A stretch of 64,000 nucleotides of DNA from Cyanophora paradoxa CCMP329 (GCA_004431415.1 QPMI01000114.1:62001-126000), one strand, 5' to 3'. Shown: positions 4,944 to 36,461, numbered from the stretch's first letter. Numbers and translations are program-made. Notes: generated by a model not told the origin, from the sequence alone.

Positions 4944-5020
4944 CACAGTGTGTGACCACACACAAACACGTCGGTACCGCCGGGACGAGTCCGTGCTGCG
5001 TGGCGATTCAAATTCTGGCG

Positions 5021-7772: not shown

Positions 7773-8467
7773 CTCCCACTATAGCTAGTAGAATGGGGCA
7801 GGAAGTGACACTGTCCTGACAATATTTAATGTAAATAGTGTCAGATTAAAAGTGTCGGCCGGCCTGACACTACTTGGAGCGGGGCTTCTCTTCTAGTGAT
7901 CTACAGCAGTCACTGAGTCTCCTACTGCACTAAACAAGAACTAACGAACTAACGAACAAAATGAACGAGGGAGGAGTGATCAGAGAGGGGCACACATATT
8001 ACAGACGTCGACAGGACAAGTATTGAATTGCACTGCAGCGGGCCACGAACGGAAAGCGACCGGCCGCGGGCCGAGCTCAGGATCAACGCGAGCAGCTTCG
8101 AATTCGCGAGCACTGGCCATGGGGACCTGGCCGGGCCCTCCGCAGGACCCGCCCCGCTGCGCATGCTCGGGGCCCCAGAGGCGAGGCGCCAGCAGCGGGT
8201 CGACCCGCGGCCGCGCGGGGCTGCCGGCGCCGGGGAAGGCCGCGCGGGCCGCGCGCCAGGAAGGCCGCCGGGGCGGGGCGGCGGGGCGCGGGGCGAGGAT
8301 GGTGGGGCGTCGACGTCGGTGGCGAACGAAGGGGGTGGACTCCGGGAGGGGGTCTGCGGGACGGGCGGGGTGGGCGGGGCGGGCGGGGCCCCGAGAAGCC
8401 AAGGAGGAGGCGGACGTGGGTGAAGGAGCAGGGGCGGGGGGGCGCGGGTTGGGGCGGGGCCGGGCGG

Positions 8468-15984: not shown

Positions 15985-16653
15985 AAGCTCCTCCACTTCC
16001 GCCGTCTCCAGCACCCTCGAAAACCCCTGTCTACACCTCTTGGGCAATTCTTGCATACGGCCGAAATCTAAATTCTGGCTTCGGGTGGAAAACCGCCGGA
16101 CCAATTGCAAGTAATGCACTTGAACATGAAAGTCGGAATTGGATCATCGGATTCGGATCCGGATTGGAGGGCCGGCCGGGTGCCCGGCGGCCGGGCAAGA
16201 ACTTCGGAACTTCGGGAAAGGCATGCACATGCGTATGTACAGGCCTAGGCGTTCATGAGCGCTCAAAGAACGAAGGCGAGTGTTTAAAATGCATATGATC
16301 AGCTGCAGACACATTTTTTCATGATCAGAAAGCCCATATCAAGGGCGCCTGTTATATTAGTTCAGTGACTTCATCGATCGTATAGCTATATATATATATA
16401 TATAGGCACTACCGGTTCGCGTTAATTCGAACTCTGGGTCAGCTCGTAACCAGCTTTTCTCTCTCCTTTCGGCCCACGGGGCTCACTTTTTTAGCCACTG
16501 GGCCAGGCAGCTCAGTGAAGCAATGCCACGCGCGCGTGCATGCTACAAACCACCTGTACGCGGGTCCGGATAGACCAGAAAGTATCCGTAGTAACAGAGT
16601 TGGCACCCAGCTAGCCCCAAGCCCCACCCCTCCTGCCACGCCCTGTCCTCTGA

Positions 16654-19600
16654 GACTTCTGGACAACGCTGCTCTACGATTGGCGACTGACCGACCTTGG
16701 CACGCCTGGTGACGTTACATGGGTCAAATCGGCAAGGCCCCATGCTGAAAACCCGGAAACTCCAGCCCCACAGCGCCTCCACACGGCTGCCAGGTTGGAC
16801 GGGGTGATGGCGTCCGAAGCCTTAGCAGCGCGCATGCAGGCCACTCGAACACTCTACACAGCCCGAATCCTCACTGCAATCCGCTCCGACCACTTCCCCG
16901 TGATCGCCTCATTCAATATTGAGGGCCTCCTCCCCTCGCTAGATAACGAAGGGAACACAGTTCGCCCTAGTGTCCGCCCCCAAGCCCAGCCCCTTCCCCC
17001 AGTCTTCTCCTACCTGGCGCAACCAGCAGAGACGCGAGTCAAAGCAAAGATGCACGTCCAGACCTGGCTCGCTCGTTCCTCGCACCTAGTCAACCTCATC
17101 CTCCGTCCCGCGGAACACCAGCGAACGCATCCGAAATACCCCACACGGGTTAAAAGGGCAGTCCACACGCTAATGCACGCCCTCGTGGAAGCGATTAAAT
17201 ACGCAGCCGAGTCGCCCGACCTCAGTGACGCCCAGCTTCTCCAATACCGCCAGCGCCGCGACCGGGCCCCAAGCGTTTTCACCCCAGGGACAAAGGAACA
17301 GGACTCCGGCATCCTGCTACAGGTCCAGGGCTGCCTCTCAGCGTGGGCGCGCCACGCCGACAAGTCTGGCCCCCCACCAGCACTAGCCCCTGACAGTGCA
17401 AACGATTCCAGTTCATCCCCACTACACTACCTTACACAGCTCGAGCAGACAGTTGAATTCCATAATTTTGAAGTAGCCCAGCGCCCTGAGACGGAATTCC
17501 ACTACTACCCCGTCCCCCTAGAAGCCGCCCCAATTTTCCCGGGCGCCTCCGACCGCGCGACGCCTGAAGAATGCTGGTCGCGCTACTTTGCCGCTCAGCG
17601 GCACATGGCAGCTCTTGATGCACACCGCCAAGGCTTCCAGACCGACAAACTATCCCGCAACATCGATGCCCGCCGTCACATGCTCTCCCGCTCGTCCTCG
17701 ATGGGACAAGCGATCCAAATTCTGTTCGACAAATTCAGAAGCACTGTCAAACCGTACCTCACAAAATTGGTGGACGGCATCGTGCACGTCATAACAGCGC
17801 CGCAAGCTGTGCTGACCGAATATAAAGAATTTTTCGATGAGCGATTCTGGTACCCACGCGATGCCGCCGTCACACCAGAGCGCATCCGTGCTCGCCTGGC
17901 CCTGCACCCCGAACGCGCGGAACACTGGATCCGCCAATACGCCCCCCTCCCACACGTTCAGCTCGCTACATTCGACGGCATGACGGACATGCCAGACGAC
18001 CGCGAACTCTCCGCCCGACTCGCAACCACATCAGACGGAGCCGGCGGCCCGTCGGGTCTCACTAATGGCATGCTTAAAATGATATTCTTCCCCCCGCGCC
18101 TCTCAAAAGCAGATCGTCAGCTTCTCACCCTTAAGCACAGCCACGCCGAAGTCGATGCATGGGCCAGTACTGAATTCTGGACCACTTCCCGCGATGTCAT
18201 AAAGGCGATAGTCAAAGCCACGCTTGAGGGCCATATATGCGACCACCTTCTCCGCGGACAGGTCTTTACCATCCCCAAACGCGACAACGCCACTGATCTA
18301 GGCTCCCTTCGCCCAATCACGCTACAGGAAGTTCTCTGGAAGCTTGTTACGGGCATCCTCACCGACAGGCTCGACTCCCGTCTGGAAGACCACCAGGTCC
18401 TGCGAGGACCCAACTACGGCTTCCGCCGACACGAATCTACCGACCCGGTCCTGTACGCAGTCCGCGCGGCCCTTGAGGACGCCCACGACCACCGCAAACC
18501 AATATACATCGGCCTAGGTGACATAGCTAGTGCGTACGACAGCGTCTCCTGGGAAAGCATGGAAGCCAGCTTCCGCCGGCTACGCATGCACGAGCACCCC
18601 GCTGGCCGCGCATACATCCAACTCCACGCCTACGCAGCTCGACATCGCACGGCCGCCATCCTCACGCCCCATGACCGTACAGAATGGTTCCAAGTCCGCT
18701 GCGGCCTGCCGCAGGGAGGGATTGAAGCCCCCCTTCACTGGCGCATATTCTACGACACGGTGCTCACAGCAATTGATGAAGAAGCACGGACAGCCAATAT
18801 TGGGTACCGCATGGGCCCCCTCCCAGGTACTCCCTCCGGGAAGCTCCGCGACTTTGCCCCAGGCACCACAGGCGCCGCGCGCCCCGGGGAGACTTATAGA
18901 GTCCCAGCTGGGCCCCGTTCGTTCCTATCGATCCTGGCCTACGCGGATGATACGACGATGTTTGCAGACTCCCCACACACCCTCCAGCGCTTCTTCCAGT
19001 GGCTCTCAGAATTCCTACACATTCATAACATCCGCTTGAATGCAAAGAAGAGCGAGGTAGCTTTCTGGCGACCAGACTGGCGGCCATCGCGCCCGCTTAC
19101 ACTGGCACCGATCAAAGTGGGATTGGGCCCCCAGGCCGAACCCATCGGTACCATCCATCAACCAAACGATGCCTTCCGAGTCCTTGGAGTATTTTTCACA
19201 GCGTCGCTTGACTGGGGGCACCAATTTCGCCTCCTCCTCTCACACGCACGCACCGCAATGCACCTCCTTGGCCCAAAATATCTCTCTGTTGACGAATTCC
19301 GCACTGTCTTACACCGCGTTATCTATCCTAAACTGGCCTACCCGATGCGAATCATGACGCTTAGTGCAGCCCGATGTGCACAACTGGAGCGCGTCTGGTC
19401 CGAAGTGTTTAGACATGCAGCAGGCCACGCTAAGTCAACCAGTACACCAGCACTCTACCTCCTTTACCAGCTGCGCCACGTCTCCACGCTCCTGCTCCAG
19501 TCTCAGACACTCGATGAGCGGCTCCGGCTCGAAACAACCTACATTCTCCCGGACTCCCTAACCGGACAGCTCCACCGCCAACGCATACTCGATACCCAAG

Positions 19601-22600
19601 CCCGAAATGGGCTCTGCCTGCTCCCCTACGAATACTCGAATTTAATACCGACCCCCCGGCAAGAGGACACACATCTGTGCCTGTCCATCACACGGGCCCT
19701 AGCCGCGTCTGATCATGCCTTCGCCAACTGGACGGCGTTCGCAGCGAACGGATGGGTGCTAGGCCTCTCAGGGACGGAAACTAAACTTGACCGTCGTTTC
19801 ATCCTGACTTCCCAACTTTCTCCCGCCCTCCTAGCCAGGGCCGGCGTCTTTCTCATGGAATGTGGCCTCTTCACGATGGCCCACATCACAGTTCGGATTC
19901 ATGGCGAAGTCTGCATCCCAACCTGGTCAGAGCTCTGGCAGCTTTGCCGAGTCCCCTACACAAAACGTAAACAGCCGGAATGGTGGGATTGGCTACGCGA
20001 AGAACTGTCCGAACGCGAACACTGTGACGAAGCGGAGGGCCCCACCTGGCCCCGCCCGATCCGCGCAGAATTTTGCATGCCTCTACTCTCCCGCCCCCTT
20101 GATATTCGCCAAGCAGTCCGCACTAGCCCCCTCATCGCCAAGCTCACCCCCGGCACGCCGGTCTGGACTTCAGCGGGCTATCTAGCCGAGGTCGTATCCA
20201 CGCCCCTGATAGCAGACCCGGATGCGGCGAACCTTGATCCAGAGGCAGCAGCGGAGACTGAAAAGGTCTACATGGTTCACCTGCGCCACTGGCGGCTGGA
20301 CGACTCTGAGCTCCGTGACCGCAATGAAATTATCGCAGGGACCGCTGGGGAGAAGGCTTGCTTTGTCCCCTGTCCAGCGCCATCATACTGCGGCAGCGCC
20401 CGCCTGCACAAGCACCTCGGCCTAGCTACTGATGTGTGCGAATGGCACGAATGGGCCACCCATGTACGGGTGGCTCGCATCGCTGATGCAGGCCCGCCGG
20501 GGCATCCTTCCAAGCGCTCTCGCCGTGCAGCCGACGTGCCGTTCGTCCCCCCACGGGCGCTCAACAGACGCAACAAACCCGCCCCTGAGACTCTCCCACC
20601 TGCAAACCTGACCCAAACACTCCCGACCGCGGCACAGAAACGGCTCGCAAGGCTGAACAAAAAACTAGCTTTTGTCGGGCTCCCGACGAACCGGCAAGAC
20701 TTCCGCTTAGCCTCCGGCCCCCGCCCACGCCGAATCCGTTCCCTGCCCCCGCGGCCGGTGCACGACTCGGAGTCAGAGGGTGCCGAGGCACATGCACAGC
20801 CCCGCTCGATTTACTACGAAGTACCCGAGGGGGCCGCCCGCTCCATCTGGCTCGAGCTGGCCCCCTGGTGGGAAGAATTCCAGGACGAAGCGGGGCAGCT
20901 CGACGTGGCTGAAGCGAAGCCCCCCCCCCCTGCGCGACGTGAAGACCTGAATCCATTTCTTATTCCATCGGCCCACAGGAACACAACGAACCCGCCGGCG
21001 GCACTAGCTCGGGTGATCGAGGCTACACACGCGCCAGCATCCGATGCACTCGCGACCTCAATCTGGACCGACGGGAGCACTCGACACGCAGGGAAATCCA
21101 CAGCTGCAGTCAGAACGACGTTTGGAGTGTTCATCCCCGCAGCTCGTAATCCTCAGTTGCGCTCCACAGTAACTTTCTCAGCTCGTGTTAGCGGAGTCCA
21201 ATACAACATCGGCCTCGGCGAGCTTGAGGCTGTCATGCTCGCGCTCACGTACCTCGGCAAGGATGGAGGCACCCTCACGCTCGACAGCAAAGGCACAATC
21301 TCGCTTCTGCTGCGCTTCTGCCTTACGGGAAGCAGTCTTCTCCTTCGAAAAATCCTCCGTAGCCCGTACTGCGACACAATCCTGGCAATACGTGCTATTG
21401 TCGCAGCCCGTGAACGAGCAGGCTACGTCCCCCTACCGACTCTTAACTGGACCCCAGCCCACGAGCCGAAAACCATCCCTAAAGCTGAACTTGAGCCCCG
21501 ACTAGCCCCCCTGGGACCAACCTGCCAGCCCTCAGGGGCTGCCCCGCCACGCATGCCTTTCGACGCCACCCGCCCCTACGTCGCGCGCCCTGGCCCCGCC
21601 CCGCCTCCACGCAGCCAGCCCTCTCCAGCGGAGGCCACGGCCCGGGAATATCGCAGTGTCTATGGCGGGCTAAATTTTCCCATTGCCTATCTCCACGACG
21701 GGCCCCCAGATGACGAGGGGCGTGCCCACGTGTATATTGCCCCCCAAACGCTTGGCAAATATGAACAATACTTGGCAAACCCTGAAATCATAGAGCTTGC
21801 TCAATTTCGAACGCCGCACCACCTCCTACTTGACCTTGCCGCGGCTACCCCCGATCTGGCAGCACACCCAGACAAGCAATGCATAATCTGGGAGACTGCT
21901 ATTCGCATTCCGAAGGCCCACACACGAGTGCTGCCCGATAACTCTCTCGTGATAACGGCTCCAGCAGACTTCCTACGCCGCTACTCGACCTGGCTCGCCG
22001 CCCTTCCGCATCAATATCGCAACCGTATCAGTCTCCACTGCACCTCCCCCATCAACCCCATATTCTGGCCCGAAGTTGACGTGTCCCTCCCAACAACAGG
22101 CCCGTCACGCACGGAGTACTGGGATGCACTCGCAGTCCGAGCGAATGCACGTCGCAATTACCCTCTCACTGGCCCTCCGTCCCCGACCGGGGCACGGCGC
22201 GACCAGACCACCTGGCTCACCTCGCCGCCTCGATGGCAGCTGGCTGAAAACGGTTCATTCCCGGCTGAACACCCCGCCTGGCACTGGGACGAGGACCTGC
22301 CCCTGTCCCCCAGCGACCCCACGGCAGCGTATCACCGCTGCGACCCGGACCGCCCGTGCACTTCCCTTGATTTCGTCCTTCAGGACTGGCGAGCGGGCCC
22401 CGCCCCCCTGTGCACCTTGTGCCACCCGCCCGTCTTGCCCAACACTCCTTGCCCAATCCTGCCCGAGCGGCCCTCGCATGGCAAGTTCACAGATGCAGAC
22501 GCACTCCGTGCATACCACCCGCCCCCGCCCACTGTGGGGGCCTCAGCCGCCTACCCCAACTACCGTGCTGCGCCGCTGCCGCCAACTCTACGCCAGCAAC

Positions 22601-25600
22601 TGCAGGCGGCGTCTATGCGTAACCCTCTCACGCTCTCCAATCATGAAGCCGCATCTGCGCTCCTACTTCAAGAACATCCCCTTCACGAGCAGCACGTAAT
22701 TGCGTTCCTCCGCCTCGTAGCTCGTCGAGCCGTACACGAACGGGCCCGGACGCCAGGCCTCCCCAACTGTATTTTCATCTCTCCCCGGGCAGCCAGACGG
22801 GCCCTCCTGGACCCCGACTGCCCTCCGGAATTCATTTGCTCAAACAAAGCGACTCTCCGGCCGAACGACGTTGACTACCTCCTGCTCCCCCTCCCGCCCA
22901 TCCCCGGGCCTGATGGTCGAGCACTTCTTCGCCACTGGCGCCTGGCGATTATTTCTCCACGCACCCGAGTTATACGGGTCATTGACGGCTCCCACACGCC
23001 CTGCTCCGATGTCCTCCCCGAGCTTCAAGCCTGGGCAAACGCGTGGCAGGAGCAAGCCGGGGGCCCAGCCCCGCAATGCCCCCGCTGGTTCTGCGACGCT
23101 AGCACCCTCAACTCGCCGAGCTGGCCCGGTGCAGAACACGGCGAAGATGCCCTGCTAGTAATGGCGGCCGCGGACTACATCGCATCGGGCTACATCTCAC
23201 GCATGACTGGGGCTGCCCCCGGCAAATTATCGCGCACAATTCTCCCGGCAATCCGGCTCCGGTACGCCGCTGCTCTCTACCTTTCAGACCTCAGCCTCAC
23301 TGGACAAGGCTACAAGCCAACGAAGCCTTCCTTCCCCGCTGACTGGTCCGGGCCCACTCATGGCCACCAATCCGAATTCGAAGTGGACCTGCCAACCGCG
23401 ACGACGGCACTACCGGAGCCCCCGTCGACACCCGTACCGAGCTTTGCACCGGCACCCGCGTTCACCGACATGCCCTCACCGATACCAGAGCTTGCAGCGT
23501 GCTCGGTGTCTCCTCCCACCCCGCCACCGGTCTCCTCCGTGCAAGCACTGGCGGCGGGCCCTCAGGTGCCGCCCCCTGTGCCGCCCCTCCCTCGAACTCT
23601 CTCAGAGGCCGAGAAAGCCCTGCTTCCCCAAATCCGCATCATCTGGGGCCCAGCCCTCAACCGAGGTGACTACGCAGCGGAGCACGCCGTCGTTGGGTAC
23701 CCACGCGCTCACACTACGCCAGAGAGCCGGCCATCCCGCTCGCCGGCCCCGGCACTCTACGTCGCAGACCTCGCCTGCCTCTACACAGACCTACCCCCTG
23801 CGACAAGAGGCGGACGCACTAGATATAGGACCATCGCAAGCGCTCTACCCCGTGGAGTTCCGGATCGAGTGGTCGATGCCTTCCTCGACGTCCTGGCAGC
23901 CCGACCGGCGTGCAGCGGGGGCGACGTTTGCTTCCTCCCCACTGCAATCTCCACGGCCGGTGCAGGTGCCCAACCTCACACTCTTAACCCCGCACAGACC
24001 CTGCAATATCTGCCGCCACGACCATTACGGTCGTATCGCATGGTTTTCTTCCCCGCTCTGGTCCCGTCCCGCCTCCCGCACCGGGAAGGGGACCCAGCCG
24101 ACCACTGGGTCCTCCTCCTCATTGCCCCCAGACAACGCTCGATCAGCATCTACGACGGCGGCAACCGGAGCCGACCAGACCGGACTGCCTTAGGCCTTGA
24201 CCTTGTCCGAATTTGGCTTCGACGGGATGATGAACCCTTCGCCCCGTCTCTCTGGACATCCTTCTCGACAGATGCCTGCGACGGCCCCATTCAGATCGAC
24301 CGCTCCTCCTGCGGGATCCTTCTTCTCATGACAGCCTACGTCCTCTCTGGCGACCCGTCGACGCAGCGCCTCAGCACACTCATCAGGGATTCCCCGGAAC
24401 GGCTTAGGACCTACACCCAATTCATTGTACTTGCCCTTTACCTCGGCACCACTGACATAGGCCCTGACCCCTTTCCCACGGATCAGCTCACGCTTGCAAC
24501 TCCAGAAACAGCCTGTGCTCCACCGCTCGGCAGTCGGCGCCGGCGAACCTTGCACCGCGGTGGCACGCTGCCGACGCCGCCTGAATCTGAAGTCGGTGAA
24601 GACGGCGAGACCCGCTTAACACTTGAAGACAACTGGCAGGAGAGCGACAGCGAAGAGGGCTCCCTCGTGGCTCACTCCTGCCCTTCCTCGCCAACGCTCA
24701 TCACATTGCCAGACCCGGCAGCAGACCCCCCGCCTAAATCCGATGAAGCTGCCTTCGCCCAGGTCGTAGGGAAACTACAGAGAGAACGGAGGCTGCACAT
24801 GCCTCGCGCCGAAATTCTCTCTAACCTTACCCGCCCGGCATCGCTCCGCGCAGCTGAGGTGGCCACCCTTGCCGAAGAGGACTCGAAGCCGCCCCCACCG
24901 GCCCCCGCCCCTGACCCGACCAAGAAAGACCGTGCACGAGCCCGCCGGGCGCCGGGAGCGGAACTAGTTCCCAACCCAGCGTACGACTGTTACAACGACC
25001 AGGCCGACCGCCTCGCGAAAAGCTGCAACGATGGGCCTTCCCCTGCCCTCCTATACCTTCCCGCAGGATGCGGGTCTACTACCCCACTCATACGCTACGG
25101 CACCAAGTCTGGATCTGCGGAGCCGCCAACCGGCACAGAAAAGTACGCCGGCCACCTCTTGGCGTACCGTGTGAACGGCGACCCGCGCAAACACATGGAC
25201 GAGGAAGCTCACCTTGTGGACTTCATTCAGTGGAGCTGTCAGCTCGAAGCTGGTAGACTCCTGCGCTTCACTGGCGGCCAAATCGACGCCGCCCTCGCCC
25301 TCATGTCAGCACACCGCAAAGATGGACGCCGCAAGACCCAAGCTGGGGTTCAGCTTCGCGCGACGCGCTCAAAACTACTGACTGCATCTTTGGCCACACT
25401 GCGAGTTCGTGCTTGCACGCGCCCGGACATCTATGCGGCAATCTGCCCCGAGGGACCAATTTGCCCCCGCTGTCGCCTCGCCGAGGAAGACTTCGACCAC
25501 ATCTGGGTATGCCCTGCCGCCGCTACTGCCGTCAACACCTTTCGACTAGCCGCCCGCGAGCACATCCTCAAACACGTGATGCAGCACAAGCCGACTGGAC

Positions 25601-27174
25601 TCTGCAGCTCCTGGGAATCGCTATTCCCCTTCCTGCTAGACCCTGACATGCCCAGCCCTCCGCTCGAGTTCGCTCCGGACTGCCCACTAGGCCAAAAACT
25701 AGCAATTCTCGAAGCAGCTGACCTCCTTCACCAATTCGAATTCCGCGCTCTCTTCCAGCTTGTCGCCCCGCAAGGAATTCACGCCCTACTCCGCGCATTC
25801 GGAGTTCGAGCTCTAGCCACGACCTCGAAGCAAGCAGTGAACGGCTTGGTGCAACTGGCGGACGAACATGCACGGACCATTTGGAAAACCCGCTGCGACG
25901 CAGTCATAGCCTGGGAACAGGAACACGGCATCACGTCGGGCAAAAAACGCACCAAGCGGGCTCAGGCCTCGATGCTGGCCCAGGCCTCTACTACGCCGGC
26001 CCCGGCACCAATTCCTCTCAACCCGACTACCCGATGCTCCTCGCTCGAACGCCAACAAGTCACAATCACGGAGTACCTCGGCGGGGCAGCCCCCGCCCTG
26101 GCGGCCGAGCTGGCGACGTTCACCTGGAAGAAGCCGGAAGAGGAACCTACTCAACAGCCTCCCCGACGCAGCGCCCGCCTCCGCGAACTCGACGCGCGAC
26201 GCCCTCGCTGCGACACCTGCGGGACACGCTTTGCCTCCGCCCGTCTGTGCCTCCGCCACCTCGCTACAGGTCTCTGCGTCGACAGCGCAGCGGGAGTCGG
26301 ATTCCAGCTCGTCCGCAATCCTAGCCCCTCCCAGCCCACGCCCCCGACGAACGACCTGGAACTACCTCTTCTCTACCCCCCGCAGCCCCCCGCCCGCGTA
26401 GCAAAGCGGCCTGCGGTCACGCCTGCAGCGCCCCCAACATCAGCTAAACGCTTCAGAGACGAGCACGGGGCCCCGCAGCTCCCGCCACCGTTCACCAGCA
26501 GGCCCCCACCCGCTGGCTCCAAACGTACGGCGGAGGATGACGGGGCAGCCCCGGCCTCCAGCGCCAAACGTCGCCCAGGGATAACGCCGTCAGAACTAAG
26601 CCACCCTCCGAGCAACAAACGCAAACACGCCCCGGCCCCTCGGAAGCCCCCAGGAAAGAAACGCGGCAAGCGTGACGCCTCAGCCCCCCCACCGGACCCC
26701 ATCCCAGGGCTCCCTGCGGGCTCCATCTTCAACTTCTTTGCCCCCGGCGAATGGAATCCCGCGGCAGAAGCTACAGAGCGGCCGCCTAGCATGCGCACCC
26801 CTGCGGGCCAGGCAACCCCGAAACCCCGGAAAAAGCTCCGACACCGCCAGCCAACCCGACTGGAAGAGCGGCCCCCGCTGCCCCAGCCGCCGCCACCGCC
26901 GCCGACGCCGCTGCCGCCGCCCCCCCCCAAGCCGCACACACCTCGAAAGCCCCGCAGCATACTCCAGTACCTCCCAGACATGTGCGCAACCTGCGGCTGC
27001 CGCCGCATCCACCACGACGCGCTCACCCCTCCTGGCCCGGCCCGTCTCCCTAACCTGCTCTGCCCATCCCGGCACGCACGCCAGCTTCTCAGCTCATCAC
27101 TGCGACTGTCAGCCACATACCACTTCCTCCATGTCGACCCCTCGGGACACGACATCCTGAAATACAAGGGCTAG
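16654..27174 (+). CDS. E2 polyprotein: C-terminal part of APE, RT, split RNase H with two inserted Ulp1/C48-like protease domains, zinc fingers
   Basis: The frame is open from 16654 (DFWTTLLYDWRLTD..VTW..ARLDGV..SDHFPV, the end of APE). RT motifs RPITLQE, DIASAYDSV, GLPQGG and YADD. RNase H WTDGS..WTPAH, then NDQADRLAK. Protease HW/D/Q/C motifs. Zn finger CPRC..EDFDHIWVC. Confidence 0.93.
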   Translation, partial: DFWTTLLYDWRLTDLGTPGDVTWVKSARPHAENPETPAPQRLHTAARLDGVMASEALAARMQATRTLYTARILTAIRSDHFPVIASFNIEGLLPSLDNEGNTVRPSVRPQAQPLPPVFSYLAQPAETRVKAKMHVQTWLARSSHLVNLILRPAEHQRTHPKYPTRVKRAVHTLMHALVEAIKYAAESPDLSDAQLLQYRQRRDRAPSVFTPGTKEQDSGILLQVQGCLSAWARHADKSGPPPALAPDSANDSSSSPLHYLTQLEQTVEFHNFEVAQRPETEFHYYPVPLEAAPIFPGASDRATPEECWSRYFAAQRHMAALDAHRQGFQTDKLSRNIDARRHMLSRSSSMGQAIQILFDKFRSTVKPYLTKLVDGIVHVITAPQAVLTEYKEFFDERFWYPRDAAVTPERIRARLALHPERAEHWIRQYAPLPHVQLATFDGMTDMPDDRELSARLATTSDGAGGPSGLTNGMLKMIFFPPRLSKADRQLLTLKHSHAEVDAWASTEFWTTSRDVIKAIVKATLEGHICDHLLRGQVFTIPKRDNATDLGSLRPITLQEVLWKLVTGILTDRLDSRLEDHQVLRGPNYGFRRHESTDPVLYAVRAALEDAHDHRKPIYIGLGDIASAYDSVSWESMEASFRRLRMHEHPAGRAYIQLHAYAARHRTAAILTPHDRTEWFQVRCGLPQGGIEAPLHWRIFYDTVLTAIDEEARTANIGYRMGPLPGTPSGKLRDFAPGTTGAARPGETYRVPAGPRSFLSILAYADDTTMFADSPHTLQRFFQWLSEFLHIHNIRLNAKKSEVAFWRPDWRPSRPLTLAPIKVGLGPQAEPIGTIHQPNDAFRVLGVFFTASLDWGHQFRLLLSHARTAMHLLGPKYLSVDEFRTVLHRVIYPKLAYPMRIMTLSAARCAQLERVWSEVFRHAAGHAKSTSTPALYLLYQLRHVSTLLLQSQTLDERLRLETTYILPDSLTGQLHRQRILDTQARNGLCLLPYEYSNLIPTPRQEDTHLCLSITRALAASDHAFANWTAFAANGWVLGLSGTETKLDRRFILTSQLSPALLARAGVFLMECGLFTMAHITVRIHGEVCIPTWSELWQLCRVPYTKRKQPEWWDWLREELSEREHCDEAEGPTWPRPIRAEFCMPLLSRPLDIRQAVRTSPLIAKLTPGTPVWTSAGYLAEVVSTPLIADPDAANLDPEAAAETEKVYMVHLRHWRLDDSELRDRNEIIAGTAGEKACFVPCPAPSYCGSARLHKHLGLATDVCEWHEWATHVRVARIADAGPPGHPSKRSRRAADVPFVPPRALNRRNKPAPETLPPANLTQTLPTAAQKRLARLNKKLAFVGLPTNRQDFRLASGPRPRRIRSLPPRPVHDSESEGAEAHAQPRSIYYEVPEGAARSIWLELAPWWEEFQDEAGQLDVAEAKPPPPARREDLNPFLIPSAHRNTTNPPAALARVIEATHAPASDALATSIWTDGSTRHAGKSTAAVRTTFGVFIPAARNPQLRSTVTFSARVSGVQYNIGLGELEAVMLALTYLGKDGGTLTLDSKGTISLLLRFCLTGSSLLLRKILRSPYCDTILAIRAIVAARERAGYVPLPTLNWTPAHEPKTIPKAELEPRLAPLGPTCQPSGAAPPRMPFDATRPYVARPGPAPPPRSQPSPAEATAREYRSVYGGLNFPIAYLHDGPPDDEGRAHVYIAPQTLGKYEQYLANPEIIELAQFRTPHHLLLDLAAATPDLAAHPDKQCIIWETAIRIPKAHTRVLPDNSLVITAPADFLRRYSTWLAALPHQYRNRISLHCTSPINPIFWPEVDVSLPTTGPSRTEYWDALAVRANARRNYPLTGPPSPTGARRDQTTWLTSPPRWQLAENGSFPAEHPAWHWDEDLPLSPSDPTAAYHRCDPDRPCTSLDFVLQDWRAGPAPLCTLCHPPVLPNTPCPILPERPSHGKFTDADALRAYHPPPPTVGASAAYPNYRAAPLPPTLRQQLQAASMRNPLTLSNHEAASALLLQEHPLHEQHVIAFLRLVARRAVHERARTPGLPNCIFISPRAARRALLDPDCPPEFICSNKATLRPNDVDYLLLPLPPIPGPDGRALLRHWRLAIISPRTRVIRVIDGSHTPCSDVLPELQAWANAWQEQAGGPAPQCPRWFCDASTLNSPSWPGAEHGEDALLVMAAADYIASGYISRMTGAAPGKLSRTILPAIRLRYAAALYLSDLSLTGQGYKPTKPSFPADWSGPTHGHQSEFEVDLPTATTALPEPPSTPVPSFAPAPAFTDMPSPIPELAACSVSPPTPPPVSSVQALAAGPQVPPPVPPLPRTLSEAEKALLPQIRIIWGPALNRGDYAAEHAVVGYPRAHTTPESRPSRSPAPALYVADLACLYTDLPPATRGGRTRYRTIASALPRGVPDRVVDAFLDVLAARPACSGGDVCFLPTAISTAGAGAQPHTLNPAQTLQYLPPRPLRSYRMVFFPALVPSRLPHREGDPADHWVLLLIAPRQRSISIYDGGNRSRPDRTALGLDLVRIWLRRDDEPFAPSLWTSFSTDACDGPIQIDRSSCGILLLMTAYVLSGDPSTQRLSTLIRDSPERLRTYTQFIVLALYLGTTDIGPDPFPTDQLTLATPETACAPPLGSRRRRTLHRGGTLPTPPESEVGEDGETRLTLEDNWQESDSEEGSLVAHSCPSSPTLITLPDPAADPPPKSDEAAFAQVVGKLQRERRLHMPRAEILSNLTRPASLRAAEVATLAEEDSKPPPPAPAPDPTKKDRARARRAPGAELVPNPAYDCYNDQADRLAKSCNDGPSPALLYLPAGCGSTTPLIRYGTKSGSAEPPTGTEKYAGHLLAYRVNGDPRKHMDEEAHLVDFIQWSCQLEAGRLLRFTGGQIDAALALMSAHRKDGRRKTQAGVQLRATRSKLLTASLATLRVRACTRPDIYAAICPEGPICPRCRLAEEDFDHIWVCPAAATAVNTFRLAAREHILKHVMQHKPTGLCSSWESLFPFLLDPDMPSPPLEFAPDCPLGQKLAILEAADLLHQFEFRALFQLVAPQGIHALLRAFGVRALATTSKQAVNGLVQLADEHARTIWKTRCDAVIAWEQEHGITSGKKRTKRAQASMLAQASTTPAPAPIPLNPTTRCSSLERQQVTITEYLGGAAPALAAELATFTWKKPEEEPTQQPPRRSARLRELDARRPRCDTCGTRFASARLCLRHLATGLCVDSAAGVGFQLVRNPSPSQPTPPTNDLELPLLYPPQPPARVAKRPAVTPAAPPTSAKRFRDEHGAPQLPPPFTSRPPPAGSKRTAEDDGAAPASSAKRRPGITPSELSHPPSNKRKHAPAPRKPPGKKRGKRDASAPPPDPIPGLPAGSIFNFFAPGEWNPAAEATERPPSMRTPAGQATPKPRKKLRHRQPTRLEERPPLPQPPPPPPTPLPPPPPKPHTPRKPRSILQYLPDMCATCGCRRIHHDALTPPGPARLPNLLCPSRHARQLLSSSLRLSATYHFLHVDPSGHDILKYKG

Positions 27175-27342
27175 CAAGAAGGTCCGGGGGGGAGGGGGGG
27201 GACGGGGGGGGAGGGGAGGGGGGGGGGGGGGGGGCGCAGGTCTCGGAGCGCGGCGTCGAACTCGTCACGCTGGTCGGAGCTGGACTTCGAACGGCGGCGG
27301 CGACTGCGAGCGCACCGGCACCGCGGACCCCTTCCTCCTACC

Positions 27343-30300
27343 TAATTCAATGAATTCGCACACACCGAGACAATACGGCTAATGATAGAACTGAGGTGTC
27401 CGTAAAGTGTCAAGTCGAAAGATGAGCCTACTGGTTACGCCGGGTAGGGAACCTAACAGCCATCGGACAGGGTGGAGCTAGTCAAGGAGACGTAAACTAA
27501 AGCAAAGCTAACCCAGAGCAGAGAGCTACTACCTATACATCTAGCCTAGCTTAGGACTAGGCTACAGAGAGGACTACCCAGGGGTCTACGAGTGCTGCCT
27601 GCTAGTGCTGCCTGCCTAGGGACCGTCGGGACGTCCGGAGCTCGCGGGCTGTTCTACTGTACGGTAGGAAAGCCAGGACGGACCCGCGGTCTAATCTGCC
27701 TACTCTCGACGCGGCCGCGACTACAGTTAGCGCGGCGGGCTCCGCGTCGAGGGGGCCGCTCGCCCGAAGCGCGGGTGGAAGCACGTCGGCGTAGAGGGGC
27801 CGAGGGGAATGAGGCGAGGGGGACGTTGCGGGGAAGAAGTGGGGCGGGACGGAGAAGGTCGGCGCCGGCCGTGGCGGGGGGGGGGAGGGTCGGATTTCTC
27901 GGTCAGCAGGGCTTCCAGCCTCGAACCAGCCGCCGCACCCCGCCGCGGGCAATTGCGAGCCCCCTCCGCGGCGGTCCTTCAACCCACGGTCCTGGCACGA
28001 TGGCCGGGGTATCTGGTGGGTGCAACGACCAGCCGAAGCCTTCCGCCAAGCCTTCCGGTCCATCGTTCCCTCCCTGTCGAGGCGCGAGGAGCGTTGGCGA
28101 GGTCGTGAGTGGGAGGCAGGGCCAAGAGAGCGAGCAGGAGGGCAGAACGGGAGAGGGAGGCAAGGCAGGCGCTCGCTTGGGCGGGCCCAGCGAGTCGGAC
28201 GGGGCGGCTATATCTAGTGTGTGCGAGGCTAAGAGTAGAGCAGGGAAGTTTCTCGAGGACTAGGTATGGTGAAGTAGTAGGTAGGTGGTGTCGAGAGTCT
28301 CCTCCCGACGTAGCCCCCCCCCCCCCCCCCCCTTTCGCGCGACTCGGGTACCGTTTAGAGCGGGCTAGGATGTGGCTCCCAAGGGCGTACCTTGACGCAA
28401 TCGTAGAGCTCTTGGGCGCGGAGCGCCGCCTTCCAGCCCGCGTACTCCGGTGGGCAGTCTGCGTTCCGAGCGGCGTTGAGTAGATTGTGAAGGCGAATCG
28501 GCCCGTCGCAGGCGGCGCAGACTTCCTTACAGGTCCGGGGCCGCGGGCCCGCTCTCGGGCGCGGGCGCCCGTGCGGGGCGGGCGCGGTCGCTTCTTTGAG
28601 GCCTGGGAGACGCGGCAGTCGCGTTCCCACTCCGCGTTGATTTCGCAGCGACGTGACCAGAGGCGTCGGGCCCGCTCCAGAAGCGTCTGCCGAACGCGTT
28701 TAGCTGCGCGTGCCGCGTACCGGGGTGCAAGGTTCAGGCAGCGTGCGAGGGCGCTTTCTAGACTCTGCGGAGCAAGGCCCTGGAGCACCCAGAGGCGCGG
28801 GTACGCGTACGGCCTACCATCGTAGCTGCGCGCCTCGGCGTCGTCGTCCGCGACGCGGAGGAAGATTGGGACCAGGTCGGGGGCAAGGAGGGCTCCTGCT
28901 GGCGGCGCTGTGAGTCCGTGGGCCTCTCTGTATGCGCAGAGCAGAAGTCGGTTCAGTTCGCGAGCAGTCTCCGCGCGGTGCGCGACCGCATGCGGACCCG
29001 GGCACAGGAAGACGTGCGGGAAAGTTTCAGTCGGGCCTGCGGTAAGAGCCGTCGGTGCCCGGTTCGGGCGGCTGGGGCCCGCTGCTGGTTGGGCATGCGA
29101 GGCCTCTGGTGCAGTCTGGCTGTTCTGTGAGGCTGTCGGGCCGCTAGTCTCTGCACGAGGGAAAGGCGTTCTGGTGGCGCAGCCCGCACAGCGTCCCCCA
29201 GGGTTGCAGGCGGCGTAGAGTTCCTTCTGGTCACGTACCCGGGCTTCGTTCGCTGGTAGCGAGCTACAGAGCAGCTGCGTCCGAAACTTGAATAGCGCGT
29301 TGCGGGCTCCATTGGCGCCTTGGAATCGGGAGCCTACGCTCGTTTCCGCATATAGCCCTGCTATGTCTGCGCCGTCGGCGCCTCGGCGCAGGAGCGCGCC
29401 AGCCAGCGGTTGTTGGGTCCAGGCAAAGTGCGTCTGGTGCTCGTGAAGTGCGTCCATGTGTGCCTTGGGGTCCCCTTCCACCCGTCGTGTGCGCCCGTCG
29501 GGGTCGCTGATGGTGAGCACCGCAGGCATGCTGAAGGCCGGCGGCAGAAAGAGAGGTTCATGCCGGTTTTCGTCCGCCAGATCCAGGTCGGCCGCCACGT
29601 TCGCTCCGGCGTCCGCGATGTCGTTGTGGGGGTCGCGGGCGTCGCCCTTCGCGTGCGCTTTGACTTTGACGAGTTTGAGCGGCCGCCCGCGCTCCTCTAG
29701 CATTGTCCTGAGCTTGCTCCATGCGTACAGTTCCGCGGAGCAGGCGTGCCGGATGTATTCCGCGGGCTGCGGCAGCTCGCGTGCTGGACGAAATCGGAGT
29801 ACCAGCGGATCGCGTTCATGTTGTCGACGTGTAGAACCGCTCCGAAAGGCGAGAGCAGGTCAGCCATGAGCACCGCCTGGAGTTCCGCCTTGTTGATCTC
29901 CTGCAGGCCCCGGAGCCGGGCAAAGAAGTCCGTGAGGATACCCGGCGGGTGCAGGCTTGCGCCAGTTCTGAGGTCCGTTTCCGGCCAGTGTACTGCGTAG
30001 CCCGCGCGAGCGTTAACCGTCTGGCCCTCTTTCAGGCTCCCGTCCGTCCAGGCGTACGCTGGGGCGTCGGCCACGTATGAGCCGCCGGACGCCGCCTCGG
30101 CCTCCAGGTGCTCTTTGCGGTAGCGGGCTTCGAGGCCCTTCCAGGTCTCCAGGTATGCAACCCAACTGTACGGATCGGCCTGATAGTAATATAGCTCGCG
30201 CGCCTCCTTGTTGGAGCTGACCGGGGGCGCTTCATCTTGCGGCAGGGGGGCAAGTCGGGCGGGTTCGCCTCGAGCGTGGCGAGGTGAGCGGCGTCGGGCT

Positions 30301-33300
30301 CGGAGAGGAGGTGCCAGTTGACCCTCTCATCGCCCTCCTGCTTTGCCTGCAGCAGCATCCGCCATCGGTGCGCAGTGATGGTCGCGGCCGCCTGCCTGAA
30401 GGGCTTGAAGTATTCAAGACGGGCTTGGCGCAGGACCTGGCGACTGGCGCGCCCGAGCGCGTCTGTACCTGCCCTCGCATTCTTCCACGGGGGCGCCCGA
30501 CACTTCTACTAGCTCCACCGTGCCGGGGATCGTGCAGAGTGCGGACGCGTGCTCTACCCATCCTCCCACCGCCGTCCCGTACTTGCCCTCGTCATCGCAG
30601 GTGCTCGTCGCCCGGCAGGCCGCGCCGGCGCCTTGAGGGCAGACGTGGTTGTCGTGCCAGTGGCGGCGGCCCTCTCCCGGTACGATATTAAAGCGGCGCG
30701 CAGCTGGGGCGGGCGGCCCTTCGCGGGGTCCGAGCTGACAGTGGCCATCGCAGCGGCAGTAGGCTCCGTTGGCCTCGTCGTCGGCCTCTTCTGGACGGGG
30801 ACCCAGTGCTCCAGCCGGCACTCCGTCGCTACTAGGCTGCCGGCCTCGGCCTCAGCGGAGCGGACCCGGCCGATTTCCGGTACCGCATCCGTCTCGTGAA
30901 TCGTTGCGAGGTCGTAGTAGCAGACGAAGTCTCCCGGTTGGTGAATTAACTTCCTTGCCCCGCCCGGAAGCTGTACCATGGCCGAGGAAGGGGTACCGGG
31001 CGGTTGCCGCATGGGGTATCGGAGGGCGCCCGAACCGCGCCCGTCGATCGTGAGGGCCTTGGCCACCGCCTTCCACCAGGCGGGCGCTGCCCAAGGGAGC
31101 GTGCCGCGGGGGGCGCGGAGGTGCAGGTCTCGCCAGGTGCAGAGGCGTTCCCCATCGCGCGCCGTGACGTCGGACATCCAGTAGAGCCGTGCGCGGTGGA
31201 GGGCGGGCGCAGCCGTGCTGAACACTTCCCGGGGAATGTGTGAGGTAAGCACGAATTCCCGGCGCAGTTCCGCGGGGTCGGGCCAAGTGGCTGCGGGGGG
31301 GTACGGCGTGAACAAGAAGCGGGCGTGGTTGGACTGGATCCGGTAGAGCCGGCGCTGCAGGAGCGGCATCACTGCGGCGATCGCATTCGATCGAGCAAGC
31401 TGGCGTGACACTGGGGCGTTCAGGAACTCGGTCGGCAGCAGCGGGACGCCTAGCTTGCGCTGGAGGTCCCGGATGCGGTGCATCATCACCTGAGATAGCA
31501 GCTCTTCCGGCTCGCCACAGAGGCGGACGAGCAGATCCGTGATTTGGTTCTTGGCCATCATGTGCGCTGTGCGCGGCAGGCTGTACGTGCCGTGGCTCCA
31601 GAGCGCGTAGTTGGAAGTCGATGCCGCCAGGCCCCCATGGTGCTTAACCACGCGCATCCAGATGGCATCTAGGCGATCGCACTGCCTCTCTGTGAGCGGC
31701 GTCACTTTGAGCCCGTAGGCGATCCGCGCCTGCACGACGGCCTCGACAACGTAGCAGGCCTCTTGCGCGGTCAGCTGCTTACGAGCTATGACCGCCACCG
31801 TCTCGCGAGCCTGCGTTTCCATCTGTCTGATCTGCTCCTTCCACGACAGGTTCGCGGTCAGGTAGACGCCGAGCAGCTTGAAATGCTCGCCCGGTTTCAG
31901 CTTCTTGCCGACCGGGACGCGGGGATTGCCGAGCAGCGGGGGTTCAGGCTCGGGTGAGACGTTGTTGTACGCAAACTCTGTTTTCCGCGCGTTGACGGCG
32001 ATGTCGTGCAGGCGGAAGAATTCAGACGCCACGTCCGCGAGCATCTGGATCCCTTCGGCCGATCCGCTCATCCACTGCGTGTCGTCCGCGTAGGCGCTCC
32101 CGGTCACCCGTGCGGGGGCGAAGTCCGCGTCGTCTTCGCCCATGCCCATGACGTACGCGACCCCCGCGCCCCCCTTTTCCTGCTCGAGCCTGTCCAATTC
32201 TTGTTGAGCGCAGAGCAAGGCATCGTAGAAGATGAGCCAGTGGAGCGGGGATTCGATGCCGCCCTGCGGGAGCCCACATTCGAGTTCAAACACGTCTGAC
32301 AGTCCGTGGCCCGTGATAGCTCGCGCCCGGCGTCGTTCGAATATGTTGCGGTGCAGGTCGATGTACGTCTCGGGGGCCCCGATGCGTCGGAGGGAGAGCT
32401 CCATGCTGGCCCAGGAAACTGAATCGTACGCCCGTCTGATATCCTGTAGCAAGAGGTAGATGGGCTTGCGGTGCTCCTTAGCGTCCTCTAGAATAGCGAC
32501 CATTAGGTGAAGGGCATCATCGGTCGCCTTAGCCTTCCTGAAGCCATAATTTACCCCTTAAGGATTCCGTGCTTCTCGATGGCCTCGGCTAGCCGTTTCG
32601 TGACGAGGCCCGTCGTTAGCTTGAGGCCAACTTCCTGCAGCGTGATCGGGCGGAGGTTCCCTTCAATGTCTCCGTCCCAGCTCCCGTTCTTGGGGATCCC
32701 GAAGATATTGCTCTCACACATCTCGGCGGGCAGGTCGCGCAGGCGGAGGGCCTCGCAGACGATGGCCATCAGGAGCCGACGACCGCGGGGGGGGTACGCC
32801 TCTGGATCCATGGCGTCCGGCAGGTCGGGGTTCCAGAGCGTCTTCAGGATCGCGTTCGTGCAGTTGGAGGGCCCTCCCGCTCCATCCGTGAGCGAGCGCA
32901 CGTGTGCCCCTAGCTCTTCGTACGTAGGCTCAGCCATGACTCCCGCGAAGGCTTCCGCGGTCGCCACGTGCGTCCGAGGGGGCGGTAGAGCGCGCGCCAG
33001 AAGTCGGGGGGCAGGAAGGCTAGCTGGGAGTCGGGTATTAAGTCCGCTGTGCACCCTACCAGGGGGTTTCTCTTCGCACACCACTGACGCCAGTGCTCCG
33101 CCATCACTGCCTTCACCTCCTCGGGGCCGTGTAAATTTCATAGAAGTTGCCTTCGCGCGCGAGGCGGGTGACGTGCATGATCGGCTCCCCCTGGACCGCT
33201 CCAGAATGGAGTCTAGATAGCTGCGCAGCTTGCGCGGGTCTGCAAACCGGGCCTGGCGCGCAGTAACGAATTCCTGGATCTGTCGCTGCTTCTCTGCGCG

Positions 33301-35621
33301 CGTCTCGTGTTGGTGGCGCCGGCGGACGCGGTTGCGCCATGCGTTCAGCGACCGGAAGTACAGCCGCCACGCTACGTAGCGCCCCGGGAACGGCGCCTCG
33401 TCGTCAGCGTCGCGTACGGGGCGGCGGGGCATGGGTTCGGGTCCGGGGACGAGCCCTTTGATGAGAGCCTCCAGTTTCTCGATCCGGGCGACCAGCGGGG
33501 CCGACGGCAAGCCTCCGGGCGCTTCAACAGTCCATCCAGCGATCAGGCGCTCCACTTTCTTGGACATGACCAGCTGCCACGGCACCGCTCTGCGAGTGGG
33601 CGGGCGCGATCCGCGGGCTTTCAAGCATTTGTGTTCCTTAGCGAGTGTCAGCACCGCCTCCGTGGCCTGTCGGTAGAGAGAGCTGACCCGGTCCCTGCGC
33701 TCTTGTTCCGTGCCCGCCGCGCCTAGCGCTTTCTCAAGATCGCTTTCCAGGGCTTGCAGACGGTCTTCTACAGCCTTTCGGAAGGCCGGCAGCTTCTCCT
33801 TCTCAGTAGGTGCGGTGCGAAGAGCGGCGGCGGGTGCGCCGGGCGGGCATCGCCCGCGGGCGGTCTGGCGAGTTCGGCTTTGAGCAGATCGTAGTCGGCC
33901 ATGACCGGGAAGTGGTCAGAGGGGTGCGGTAGCGCACCTCTGGCGGCAGCGGGTGCACCGCCAGGAGCGCTGGCGCGAGACCTGCAGAGTGCAACACCGC
34001 ATCGATACGTCCTGCCGAGATGACCGCGGCGCCTTCGGCGACGGCGGGCCCGTCCATTTGCTGGTCCTGTTCCGAGTCCGAGTCGTCGGCGCCGTCGTCC
34101 CCGCCATCCTCTTCGGCGCCGTGCTGGCTCGGGCCGCGCCTGATGAAGGTAACTTCGTGTTCGTGGCCTTTCTGTGTCGCCGCGTCAACTAGTGCCCAGG
34201 TGCCGGTCAGTTTTCCCCACCACTCGCGTTCCGGCGTCCAGGACTGGACGAACCGTCCCGCGCGGATGCGGGACGTGGCCGGCGTCTTCACGGAGTTCCA
34301 GTCGCCGAGAAGGATGAGGTGCGCGGTCGAGCGCGATCGGAAGTCCGCGTAGATGCGCTCGATGCATTCGAGGAGCGCCGCCTGATCGGTCTTGTGCTCA
34401 GGCTTCCGCTGGGTGGCCGGCATGTATACGCTCACTACGAAGAGCTGGCGGTTTCCCTTAAAGCGCATTTCACAGCCGGCAAGCCGGCCCGGGTAGTGAT
34501 AGTGGCGCGCGATGTGCCGCGCCCAGGGCGCCGCCACCCATAGCGCCGCTCCGTTTCCTTTCGGTTTTGTTTTCTTAATTGAGTGGATTAGGCGACCCCG
34601 CGTGATCGAGCTCTTGGGGGGCTCGCCGGGCTCCGCTGCCGGGGTGAAGAGCGCCGAGTGCAGTTCGGCGCGCGTGACTGAGAGCTCTTGGAGAGCCATC
34701 ACGTCGACCCCCCATTTCACGGCGAAGTCTTCGGCCTGCTGAAGCCGGCCCTCGGACGTGCCCCGCACGTTAAAGGTCATCATCCTGAGATTCCCCTCCG
34801 GCTTGTGGCGCATGAGCGATGGGGGCGGGCCTATGAGGGGGCTCCCTGAGGCGTAATGGGTGGTTGGGAAAAGGTCGCCAAACGAGATATGCCCCGGAGC
34901 GTTAGTGTTGACGTCTACAGCGGCAGACACGTTAGGGGGGTCGGACAGCGTCTAGGGTTGGAGGATGTCTGTGCTCGGCGGGACGCGCGCAGCGGTCCGA
35001 CTGATCAGCTAGTTGGTCACATCTGGCTGCCCAGAGATGCGCGTGCACGTGGTTCCAGGCGTGCGTGTGCCTAGCCGCCCCGGACCCGTCGCCTGTGCGC
35101 CGCATCGTCCAAGTCTCAAAAGTCTGCGGTCGGGAAGCCGTCAAATTACAGCTGACACGTACAGTAGCGGCCTCGCAGGAAAGGGGCGCTAAATGCGCGT
35201 CTGGGCGGGAAATGGGCGATGCGGCTTGCCCAGCCTCAGCGACTTGGCGCTTGGGGGAGGAGGAGGAGGCGGGTCTGAGAGCGGGTCGGTAGAGAGCGGG
35301 TCGGCAGCGGGTGTATGGCGAGGCGTGGCCAGGGAGGCCAGACGTAGCTCGGCAAGGAGATTGATTCAAGAGGGCGGTCCAGGGTGTGCGTGAGACGCGG
35401 TAACTGCTTGCAGTTACATCACCCAGGGACTCCCGGGCGATGTTGCCGCGTTGGCGGGGCGGTTTGGAGAGAGTGGCCGGCATACCTACGCAGACATCGC
35501 GGCGGACGCTACCTAGGCTGTCGCGGCCTCTACTCTCGCACTGGTGATCGCGCACGCAGCGCTACGCTGCGAGCTAGGCGGGTTGGCAGGCGCCTTCCTG
35601 TTTTTTTCCCACGGGGGGTAT
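27343..35621 (-). mobile_element. Apparently full-length non-LTR retrotransposon E3 (APE-RT-RNase H-Zn fingers), no polyA tail
   Basis: Perfect 21-bp TSD cgcggaccccttcctcctacc at 27322-27342 and 35622-35642. The 3' end is shared with the copy at 53990. Confidence 0.93.
28355..35483 (-). pseudogene. E3 single ORF broken into several frames (the shift checked lies in a homopolymer; possibly assembly errors)
   Basis: APE motifs TFNVRG, LQE, SVYMP, LGDWN and RID. RT motifs RPITLQE, QDIRRAYDSV, GLPQGG and YADD. RNase H motifs WTDGS, NKAEL, HVDN and VKAH..NDIAD. Zn fingers. One G is missing at ~32555 (LKG-VNYGF). Confidence 0.85.
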
Positions 35622-36461
35622 CGCGGACCCCTTCCTCCTACCGCTCCTCCTCCAATCTTAGAGATTTAGGATAGAGCGCACCACGGCCACATTCTACGAG
35701 ACATCAAGCGGGCATCTAGGACCGTGCAGCTCACCATGCCACGCTCACTGCTAGAGGACCGGCGCATATTATGTTCTGGAGGCGACTCGGTAGACTACAG
35801 CTAAAGCACCAGCTCGACACGACTACTAGCTGTAGCACTCTTGTCACCTATCTCCTCCTGCAGTCAGCATCCCAGTATCCGGTAGGCGAGGAGCGGGGGA
35901 CTGTTGTCAAGTGTGTACGAATGCAACAGGATTTCCAAAAAAACACGCCCTGTCCTCTGATGTTCTCACAGGGCGGCCGCCCCGCCCGTGCCTGCCCCCC
36001 TCCCTGGAGCCCCCGTAGACCCCCTCTAATAGGATAAAACACCAGGCGCCCCAGACGCAATAATTATAAGATCTAGACCCGGGGGCGCGCCCGTGCGCTT
36101 AGCTCGCGCCCCCCCCCTACCCCTCCCTCCCCCCCCCCCCCCCCACCCCCTTATCAGCTGCAGTCACATATCATAGCGGCTATCGCAAGCTACCTAGATG
36201 CCCTACCCCGCCCCGCCTCCGCTCCGCCCCCTCCGGGCCCCCGGTGGGGGTACGCCTTCGCCGGCGTCTTGGAATCAGTCGTGCTGGAACCCGGCCACAC
36301 CTGGCCTGGGCCCTCAGGGGGTCGGCGCAAGCCTGCAACAGGTGCAAACGTGACCGCCTCGTTCTCATTGATGCGATGTAGTACCTTGACCGTAAATGGA
36401 GGAGCACCCAGAGCTCAAAAAAGCGGCGCCATCGAGGTCCTTCCTCGATTCCTGATCACGA

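Follow-up and report, generated by a model that had tools for sequence, protein, structure and literature searches.

How can a ribonuclease H (RNase H) domain hold 1,177 codons of open reading frame (ORF) between the histidine of its catalytic site and the helix that carries its fourth acidic residue? The question is raised by E2, a non-LTR retrotransposon in a stretch of 64,000 nucleotides from Cyanophora paradoxa CCMP329 (GCA_004431415.1, QPMI01000114.1:62001-126000), which is referred to here as the window and from whose first letter all positions are counted. A preliminary description of the window had proposed that the RNase H of E2 is split in its His loop by an in-frame protease cassette, and that two other retrotransposons in the window, E1 and E3, show the usual spacing at this site. 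The explanation that we consider probable is a domain insertion in the His loop of the RNase H of a long interspersed nuclear element (LINE), maintained by selection, with the distant helix completing the fold.

The split RNase H domain of E2

The RNase H N-segment (21061-21474, + strand) comprises the elements b1-b2-b3-aA-b4-aB-aC-aD-b5 and contains the motifs WTDGS (21064), GELEA (21217), TLDSK (21277) and WTPAH (21448), with the residues D1426 (21070), E1476 (21220), D1497 (21283) and H1556 (codon 21460-21462). The C-segment (24994-25035, + strand) corresponds to the last helix, N-D-Q-A-D-R-L-A-K, whose D2738 (25006) is the fourth acidic residue. All RNase H motifs that the preliminary description had listed for 21061-25020 are located where it had placed them, and its 1,177-codon gap was also confirmed: the reading frame continues from the His codon (21460) to the Asn codon of NDQADRLAK (24994) with neither a stop nor a frameshift, and the insert in the b5-aE (His) loop occupies 21463-24993 (+ strand; 1,177 codons). 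Likewise, the normal His-to-helix spacing of 9 amino acids was found as described in E1 (KGH-9 aa-NEMAD) and E3 (KAH-9 aa-NDIAD). The unsplit RNase H of E1 (element at 231-4787) is recognized by the Pfam RNase_H model (41 bits, E 2.8e-10).

Homology resumes past the insert, as had been claimed: in a tblastn comparison of E2 with E1, the match after the insert begins exactly at N2734 of E2 and N907 of E1, and in a four-way alignment of E2, E1, E3 and P0001 (a full-length relative of E2, see below) the N, D and A of the helix and a later L-P are invariant. The five residues D1426, E1476, D1497, H1556 and D2738 align with those of E1, E3 and P0001, and all are kept in P0001. A nearer N-x-x-A-D helix, which would have completed the fold locally, was looked for after the His of E2 and none was found; the residues just after the His are Pro-rich, with only H-[EQ]-PKTIP conserved between E2 and P0001, and such a stretch cannot supply a substitute helix. 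According to homology, helix aE of the RNase H fold would be supplied by the helix after the insert.

The assignment of the N-segment to the RNase H family was examined by profile and by structure. A profile of the E2 and P0001 N-segments matched an RNase H profile of E1 and the protein P0006 in hhalign (probability 95%, E 3.5e-8), and the positions of the first three catalytic residues (D, E and D) coincided. The AlphaFold model of the N-segment (pLDDT 51, pTM 0.51) has exactly the order b1-b2-b3-aA-b4-aB-aC-aD-b5, and all of the top 50 Foldseek matches of this model are RNase H (HIV-1 RT, human RNase H1, MLV; best E 2e-3, TM about 0.48). VIA-align returned RNase H only (Z 8.1-8.5, rmsd 3.5 A, 111 residues aligned), including B. 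halodurans RNase H1; the aligned span corresponds to HIV RT 435-547, i.e. it reaches the His loop and stops before aE. The protein-language-model neighbours of the N-segment all fall into PF00075 or PF13456 clusters (score 0.92; the nearest is PF00075), which is taken as a lead only. When the N- and C-segments were docked as separate chains, scores of 0.49-0.51 were obtained vs 0.00-0.02 in three controls (at least 49% of contacts shared between runs; partner pLDDT 46-51), which lends weak support to their association. Together, these results support the view that the RNase H of E2 is really discontinuous.

Organization of the insert

The frame of the insert is unlikely to be open by chance: about 26 stops are expected from base composition (P of no stop, about 5e-12), the open runs in the other five frames across the insert do not exceed 328 codons, and the insert does not differ from the remainder of E2 in GC content at any of the three codon positions. 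Modules were delimited by the alignment of E2 with P0001 and by the identity per module.

The insert starts with a Pro-rich linker (linker 1, 21475-21786), followed by a conserved, Cys/His-rich domain X (21787-22494, + strand) with the motifs IWE..IR.P, CTSP.NPIF, PAW.WDEDL, AYHRC and C.LCHPP. Domain X is 42% identical to that of P0001 and 34-37% identical to that of a second relative, P0002; no Pfam, Atlas or fold match was obtained for it, and the Foldseek rows from its model (pLDDT 38) are meaningless.

Two Ulp1-like modules follow. The first (22615-23340, + strand) is a degenerate duplicate of the second (hhalign E 3e-4, probability 40%), a pseudo-protease in which the catalytic Cys is replaced by Asp (GEDA; D2118 at 23146) in both E2 and P0001, and whose His (H2047, 22933) and Asp are not conserved in P0001. 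After a variable, Pro-rich linker (linker 2, 23341-23769), the second module (23770-24480, + strand) is a Ulp1/SENP-type (C48) cysteine protease with H2437 (24103), D2454 (24154), the Gln of a PIQ motif, and C2506 (24310). Scanned alone, it passes the Pfam Peptidase_C48 cut-off narrowly (22.4 bits; cut-off 20.7), and the scores are 18.1 bits within the whole E2 ORF and 16.9 bits for the P0001 domain. As a profile it matches SENP1 and SENP8 (E 0.004), with which its His, Asp, Gln and Cys positions are in register, and P0001 keeps all four residues. The residues of the second module thus follow the order of the family (His-Asp-Cys triad and oxyanion Gln), and the first module fails in this respect. 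The insert closes with an acidic, Pro-rich linker of about 160 residues (linker 3, 24481-24951).

Hence the preliminary description stood as to a split, coding and integral insert, and its term "protease cassette" was refined: by its conserved residues the cassette is predicted to be one catalytically complete C48 domain, accompanied by one dead paralogue and one domain X, on long Pro-rich linkers.

A Gly-Gly-Thr occurs in the variable linker 3' of the second Ulp1 module in both proteins (E2, 24600-24640; P0001, about residues 2790-2800), and the two are not aligned by MAFFT; the match may be fortuitous, or it may mark a site of cleavage.

Conservation in a distant relative and in family copies

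An exhaustive HMMER search with the insert over 1.84 billion representative proteins returned two proteins, P0001 and P0002. P0001 (3,720 aa) is encoded on an independent 11.9-kb ENA metagenome contig (L001) and is full-length, from an apurinic/apyrimidinic-endonuclease-like (APE) domain (Pfam Exo_endo_phos at 13-292, 33 bits) to the C-terminal end. Its RNase H N-segment carries the motifs WHDAS, GEVAA, VLDSK and WVASH and is followed by a span of 1,176 residues, then by NDQVDKLAK, a CCHC motif and a C-terminal end as in E2. The two proteins are colinear; the reverse transcriptase (RT) is 58% identical, the RNase H segments are 45% and 49% identical, and the modules of the insert reach 35-42%. 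The RNase H residues (D, E, D, H, D) and the C48 residues are all retained. P0002 is a Cyanophora paradoxa gene-model fragment (tig00020553_g10726.t1) that carries domain X; this similarity suggests a second, diverged cassette-bearing family in the Cyanophora paradoxa genome. No match came from word-index searches of proteins, whether the query was the RNase H region together with the insert or the alignment of the N-junction, from two scans of metagenome contigs or, as expected, from a search of phage DNA.

Contigs of three Cyanophora DNA runs were compared with window positions 20900-25400. The E2 family is multi-copy in these runs, and its copies are about 90% identical across the whole insert; one contig spans the His/insert junction (21226-21839). 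No contig in the three runs skips the insert. The indels among family copies (6, 6 and 114 nt) are every one in frame, and the 6-nt deletion at 21101 coincides with the site of a 2-residue gap in P0001. Among the listed substitutions, 30 of 40 are at third codon positions (binomial p 8e-8), including, for the N-segment, 18 of the 23 listed.

A colinear relative at 35-58% identity per module, the in-frame indels and the third-position bias support selective maintenance of the split layout, as judged from these comparisons. Since the same layout occurs in a relative as distant as P0001, it would be an evolved design and not damage.

Structure of the E2 copy

The E2 copy of this non-LTR retrotransposon arose by retrotransposition, is truncated at its 5' end and has the order APE, RT, RNase H and CCHC region. 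Its ORF (16654-27174, + strand) runs without interruption from the first base of the copy to a TAG stop codon (27172-27174; 3,506 codons plus stop); the ORF listing places its start at 16795 (3,459 aa). What looks like a stop just before the ORF is the TGA within the target-site duplication (TSD), so that the truncated copy has an intact ORF from its first base onwards. The C-terminal remnant of the APE endonuclease (16654-16960, + strand; S-D-H motif at 16885) aligns to residues 205-329 of P0001, and by this alignment about the first 210 APE residues are missing owing to the 5' truncation. The RT core is located at 18271-19185 (+ strand; Pfam RVT_1, E 2.6e-20, ORF residues 493-797). Downstream of the RNase H C-segment, a region conserved in the alignment of E2, P0001, E1 and E3 (25036-26100, + strand) contains the CCHC motif (C2890, C2893, H2902 and C2906; 25462-25512) and an IW..RC.....WE motif, and the Cys/His-rich C-terminal end of the ORF (26953-27171, + strand) is 44% identical to P0001 3648-3720.

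The copy is flanked by a perfect 17-bp TSD, CACGCCCTGTCCTCTGA, at 16637-16653 (left) and 35944-35960 (right), and its A7 tail is at 35937-35943. Both the perfect TSDs and the A-tail of the preliminary description are therefore real, but the 3' ones lie beyond another element: the two TSDs are far apart because E3 sits nested in the 3' untranslated region (UTR) of E2. The first part of this UTR (27175-27342, + strand) closes with the 21-bp E3 target, and the second part (35643-35943, + strand) carries the A7 tail. E3 itself (27343-35621, - strand) is a separate LINE with the order APE-RT-unsplit RNase H, is frameshifted, and is not part of E2; it is flanked by a perfect 21-bp TSD (27322-27342 and 35622-35642). 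In a self-comparison of the window, the 3' part of E3 (27347-29648) was found again at 53990-56334; E3 thus ends at about 27343, and the E2 3' UTR continues past E3.

The perfect 17-bp TSD, the A7 tail and the truncation within APE are the hallmarks of a LINE insertion, and they support the earlier conclusion that the E2 RNA was reverse-transcribed with the insert already in place.

Two further observations concern these non-coding ends and E3. A G-rich run of about 50 nt is present in the E2 3' UTR at 27186-27234, 12 nt past the stop codon. The RNase H of E3 carries at least one frameshift, and the 3' end of E3 is without poly(A), its own-strand end being ...GAATTCATTGAATTA.

Proposed function and alternative explanations

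In the explanation that we consider probable, a cassette of about 1,170 residues is nested in the surface loop that connects strand b5, which bears the His of the catalytic site, to the last helix and its fourth acidic residue. Within the cassette, a Pro-rich linker leads to domain X and the dead Ulp1-like domain, another linker leads to the complete C48 protease, and a long linker closes the series. Both segments of the RNase H would fold together as one active domain, from which the cassette is looped out on its flexible linkers. The RNase H presumably removes the RNA template after reverse transcription, and the embedded protease may have a separate task, either on proteins of the host or the element that carry SUMO-like conjugates or in polyprotein processing. 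The cassette sits in the loop with the catalytic-site His and could therefore couple RNase H activity to its own function. Both the RNase H activity and the role of the protease are putative.

If correct, a nested cassette of about 1,170 residues is both tolerated by a catalytic domain of some 150 residues and maintained there by selection, which would be an extreme natural domain insertion. In transposons, proteases of the Ulp1 type are found repeatedly, and no role has been established for them; here, such a protease has a defined structural context, beside a dead paralogue and domain X. E2 also documents LINE diversity in glaucophytes, which has hardly been described.

Several points weigh against this explanation. 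The RNase H segments of E2 are below the Pfam gathering score and gave no Pfam RNase_H match even at E values up to 10, and a PDB-sequence search with the two-sequence N-segment profile gave no RNase H match either; the link of the N-segment to the RNase H family is therefore made by the hhalign profile-profile comparison together with the fold. Confidence in the N-segment model is low (pLDDT 51), and the support from docking is weak (partner pLDDT 46-51). The comparison is shallow, with one full-length relative and one fragment among 1.84 billion representatives. RNA evidence for the stretch was not found, the stretch being absent from the RNA runs searched, and the E2 copy, being 5'-truncated, is not itself autonomous.

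Among the alternatives, a role of the embedded protease in maturation is unlikely, yet the most probable. The C48 protease would cut the flanking linkers in cis or in trans, and the RNase H would be rebuilt non-covalently from two chains; the cassette would be released, or the polyprotein would be divided, which would tie APE-RT-RNase H (N) to RNase H (C)-CCHC. The complete and conserved catalytic His, Asp, Gln and Cys are in its favour, as are the long, poorly conserved Pro-rich and acidic linkers that flank the folded modules, and the docking of separate N- and C-segments above the controls. Protease relatives of the same clan process viral polyproteins after Gly-Gly, which also speaks for it. 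However, neither Gly-Gly nor another cleavage motif aligns at either junction, the Gly-Gly-Thr in the linker is not reliably aligned, and the conserved junction motifs (H-[EQ]-PKTIP and PNPAY) are unlike known sites; SENP-type enzymes usually need a folded, SUMO-like substrate, none of which was detected, and the docking support that this idea draws upon is weak. That the protease excises the cassette or divides the polyprotein is an attractive idea, but no positive sign of it was found.

In its strongest form, which we regard as quite unlikely, the RNase H would be two-piece by design: after cleavage of the linkers by the Ulp1-type protease, fragment complementation would join the APE-RT half to the CCHC half, and RNase H activity, and hence second-strand synthesis, would arise only after maturation. 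If true, this would be a retrovirus-like maturation switch in a LINE.

It is improbable that the RNase H is a relic, i.e. that the insertion inactivated the domain, with the segments remaining as a scaffold or linker and a host RNase H being used as in many LINEs. The N-segment without a Pfam match and its low-confidence model would fit a decayed domain, and an RNase H is absent from many non-LTR clades (PMC4640811 gives the clades that have one). On the other hand, all five active-site residues are kept in E2 and P0001 despite the 45-49% identity of the segments, the last helix (N-D-Q-x-D-x-L-A-K) is nearly invariant, and the N-segment substitutions of family copies, as counted above, fall mostly at third positions.

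Removal of the insert from the RNA (as an intron or by alternative splicing), an independent nested transposon, or an assembly artefact is scarcely tenable and largely refuted: while the length of the insert, its position between the two halves of a known domain and the genuine nesting of E3 elsewhere in E2 might suggest such an origin, no GT occurs for about 40 nt past the His codon in E2 or in L001, the retrotransposed DNA copy retains the insert and no contig skips it, the 1,177 codons are open and conserved at the protein level in P0001, the codon-position composition is uniform, and, since the insert is without a TSD or terminal repeats of its own and independent assemblies agree, it is neither a nested transposon nor an artefact. 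The preliminary description had named terminal repeats of the insert or its splicing as grounds for rejecting the split domain, and the outcome was thus in favour of the domain insertion.

Comparison with known elements

By its sequence, E2 resembles the Dualen/RandI elements, with which it shares a single giant ORF, an APE at the N terminus, an RT with more similarity to R2 than to L1, an RNase H and a C-terminal CCHC motif. Among PDB sequences, the E2 RT matches R2 proteins best (E 2.5e-7), with no match to L1 ORF2p at E 0.01; the N-terminal APE is represented by the S-D-H remnant in E2 and by a full domain in P0001. LINEs that join an RNase H with a cysteine protease are already known from Dualen. 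The Chlamydomonas Dualen reportedly has an RT, an RNase H and a cysteine protease, according to the abstract of Kojima and Fujiwara from 2005.

What sets E2 apart from Dualen/RandI is the place of its protease modules, which are enclosed by the RNase H fold and follow its His but precede its last helix. In cryptophyte Dualens, SET and C48 domains are N-terminal to APE, and this is also the position of the C48 domain in Dualen-1_GCr, unlike in E2 (PMC5029228); a figure legend in PMC9977147 names a Josephin-related cysteine protease, which would belong to Dualen-4b. Dualens have both endonucleases (PMC9977147, PMC4640811), whereas a restriction-like PD-(D/E)xK endonuclease after the CCHC motif, the defining trait of Dualen, was not detected in E2, either in the alignment of E2, P0001, E1 and E3 or in a PDB profile search (no R2 or nuclease match); furthermore, the host of E2 is a glaucophyte.

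The NeSL and Utopia elements are similar to E2 in being LINE polyproteins with a Ulp1/C48 cysteine protease whose role is not known (PMC4640811). In contrast to E2, their protease is separate, N-terminal and not nested, they have a restriction-like endonuclease and no APE, and their RNase H is absent or, in oomycete Utopia, upstream of the RT (PMC4640811). A protease nested in an RNase H is not described in PMC9977147, PMC4640811 and PMC5029228, and may have been described earlier in the 2005 Dualen paper; the Chlamydomonas Dualens may also share this nesting unremarked.

The RNase H1-type domains of E. coli RNase HI, HIV-1 RT and B. halodurans share with E2 the order of strands and helices and the D-E-D-H-D pattern. 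In known members, however, about 10 residues in one flexible loop separate the His from the last Asp, compared with 1,181 residues in E2. Within the window, E1 and E3 are like E2 in element type and in the post-RNase H and CCHC regions, but they have the 9-residue spacing and no protease cassette, and their RT identity to E2 is 28-34%.

Other features of the window

A further copy of the E3 family, E5 (53990-56830, - strand), is internally deleted and 95% identical to 27347-29648. Two EukProt gene models with Cyanophora-style names (P0003 and P0008) are built from E5, at 98-100% identity per exon (55207-56827), and these "genes" are therefore transposon fragments. Together with the Cyanophora label of P0002, these matches make Cyanophora paradoxa, a glaucophyte, very likely as the host and speak against Chlamydomonas. 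Another retroelement (48810-53290, + strand) has two adjacent ORFs, the first with an RVT_1 match (E 2.9e-29), and is only distantly related to E1-E3. The segments 4944-8613 and 37459-41051 form a segmental duplication of about 3.6 kb with 98-99% identity and about 75-80% GC content, and contain long spurious ORFs on both strands. Finally, a tandem array of units of about 1.5-1.65 kb, with 76-96% mutual identity, extends from 57203 to the end of the window at 64000.

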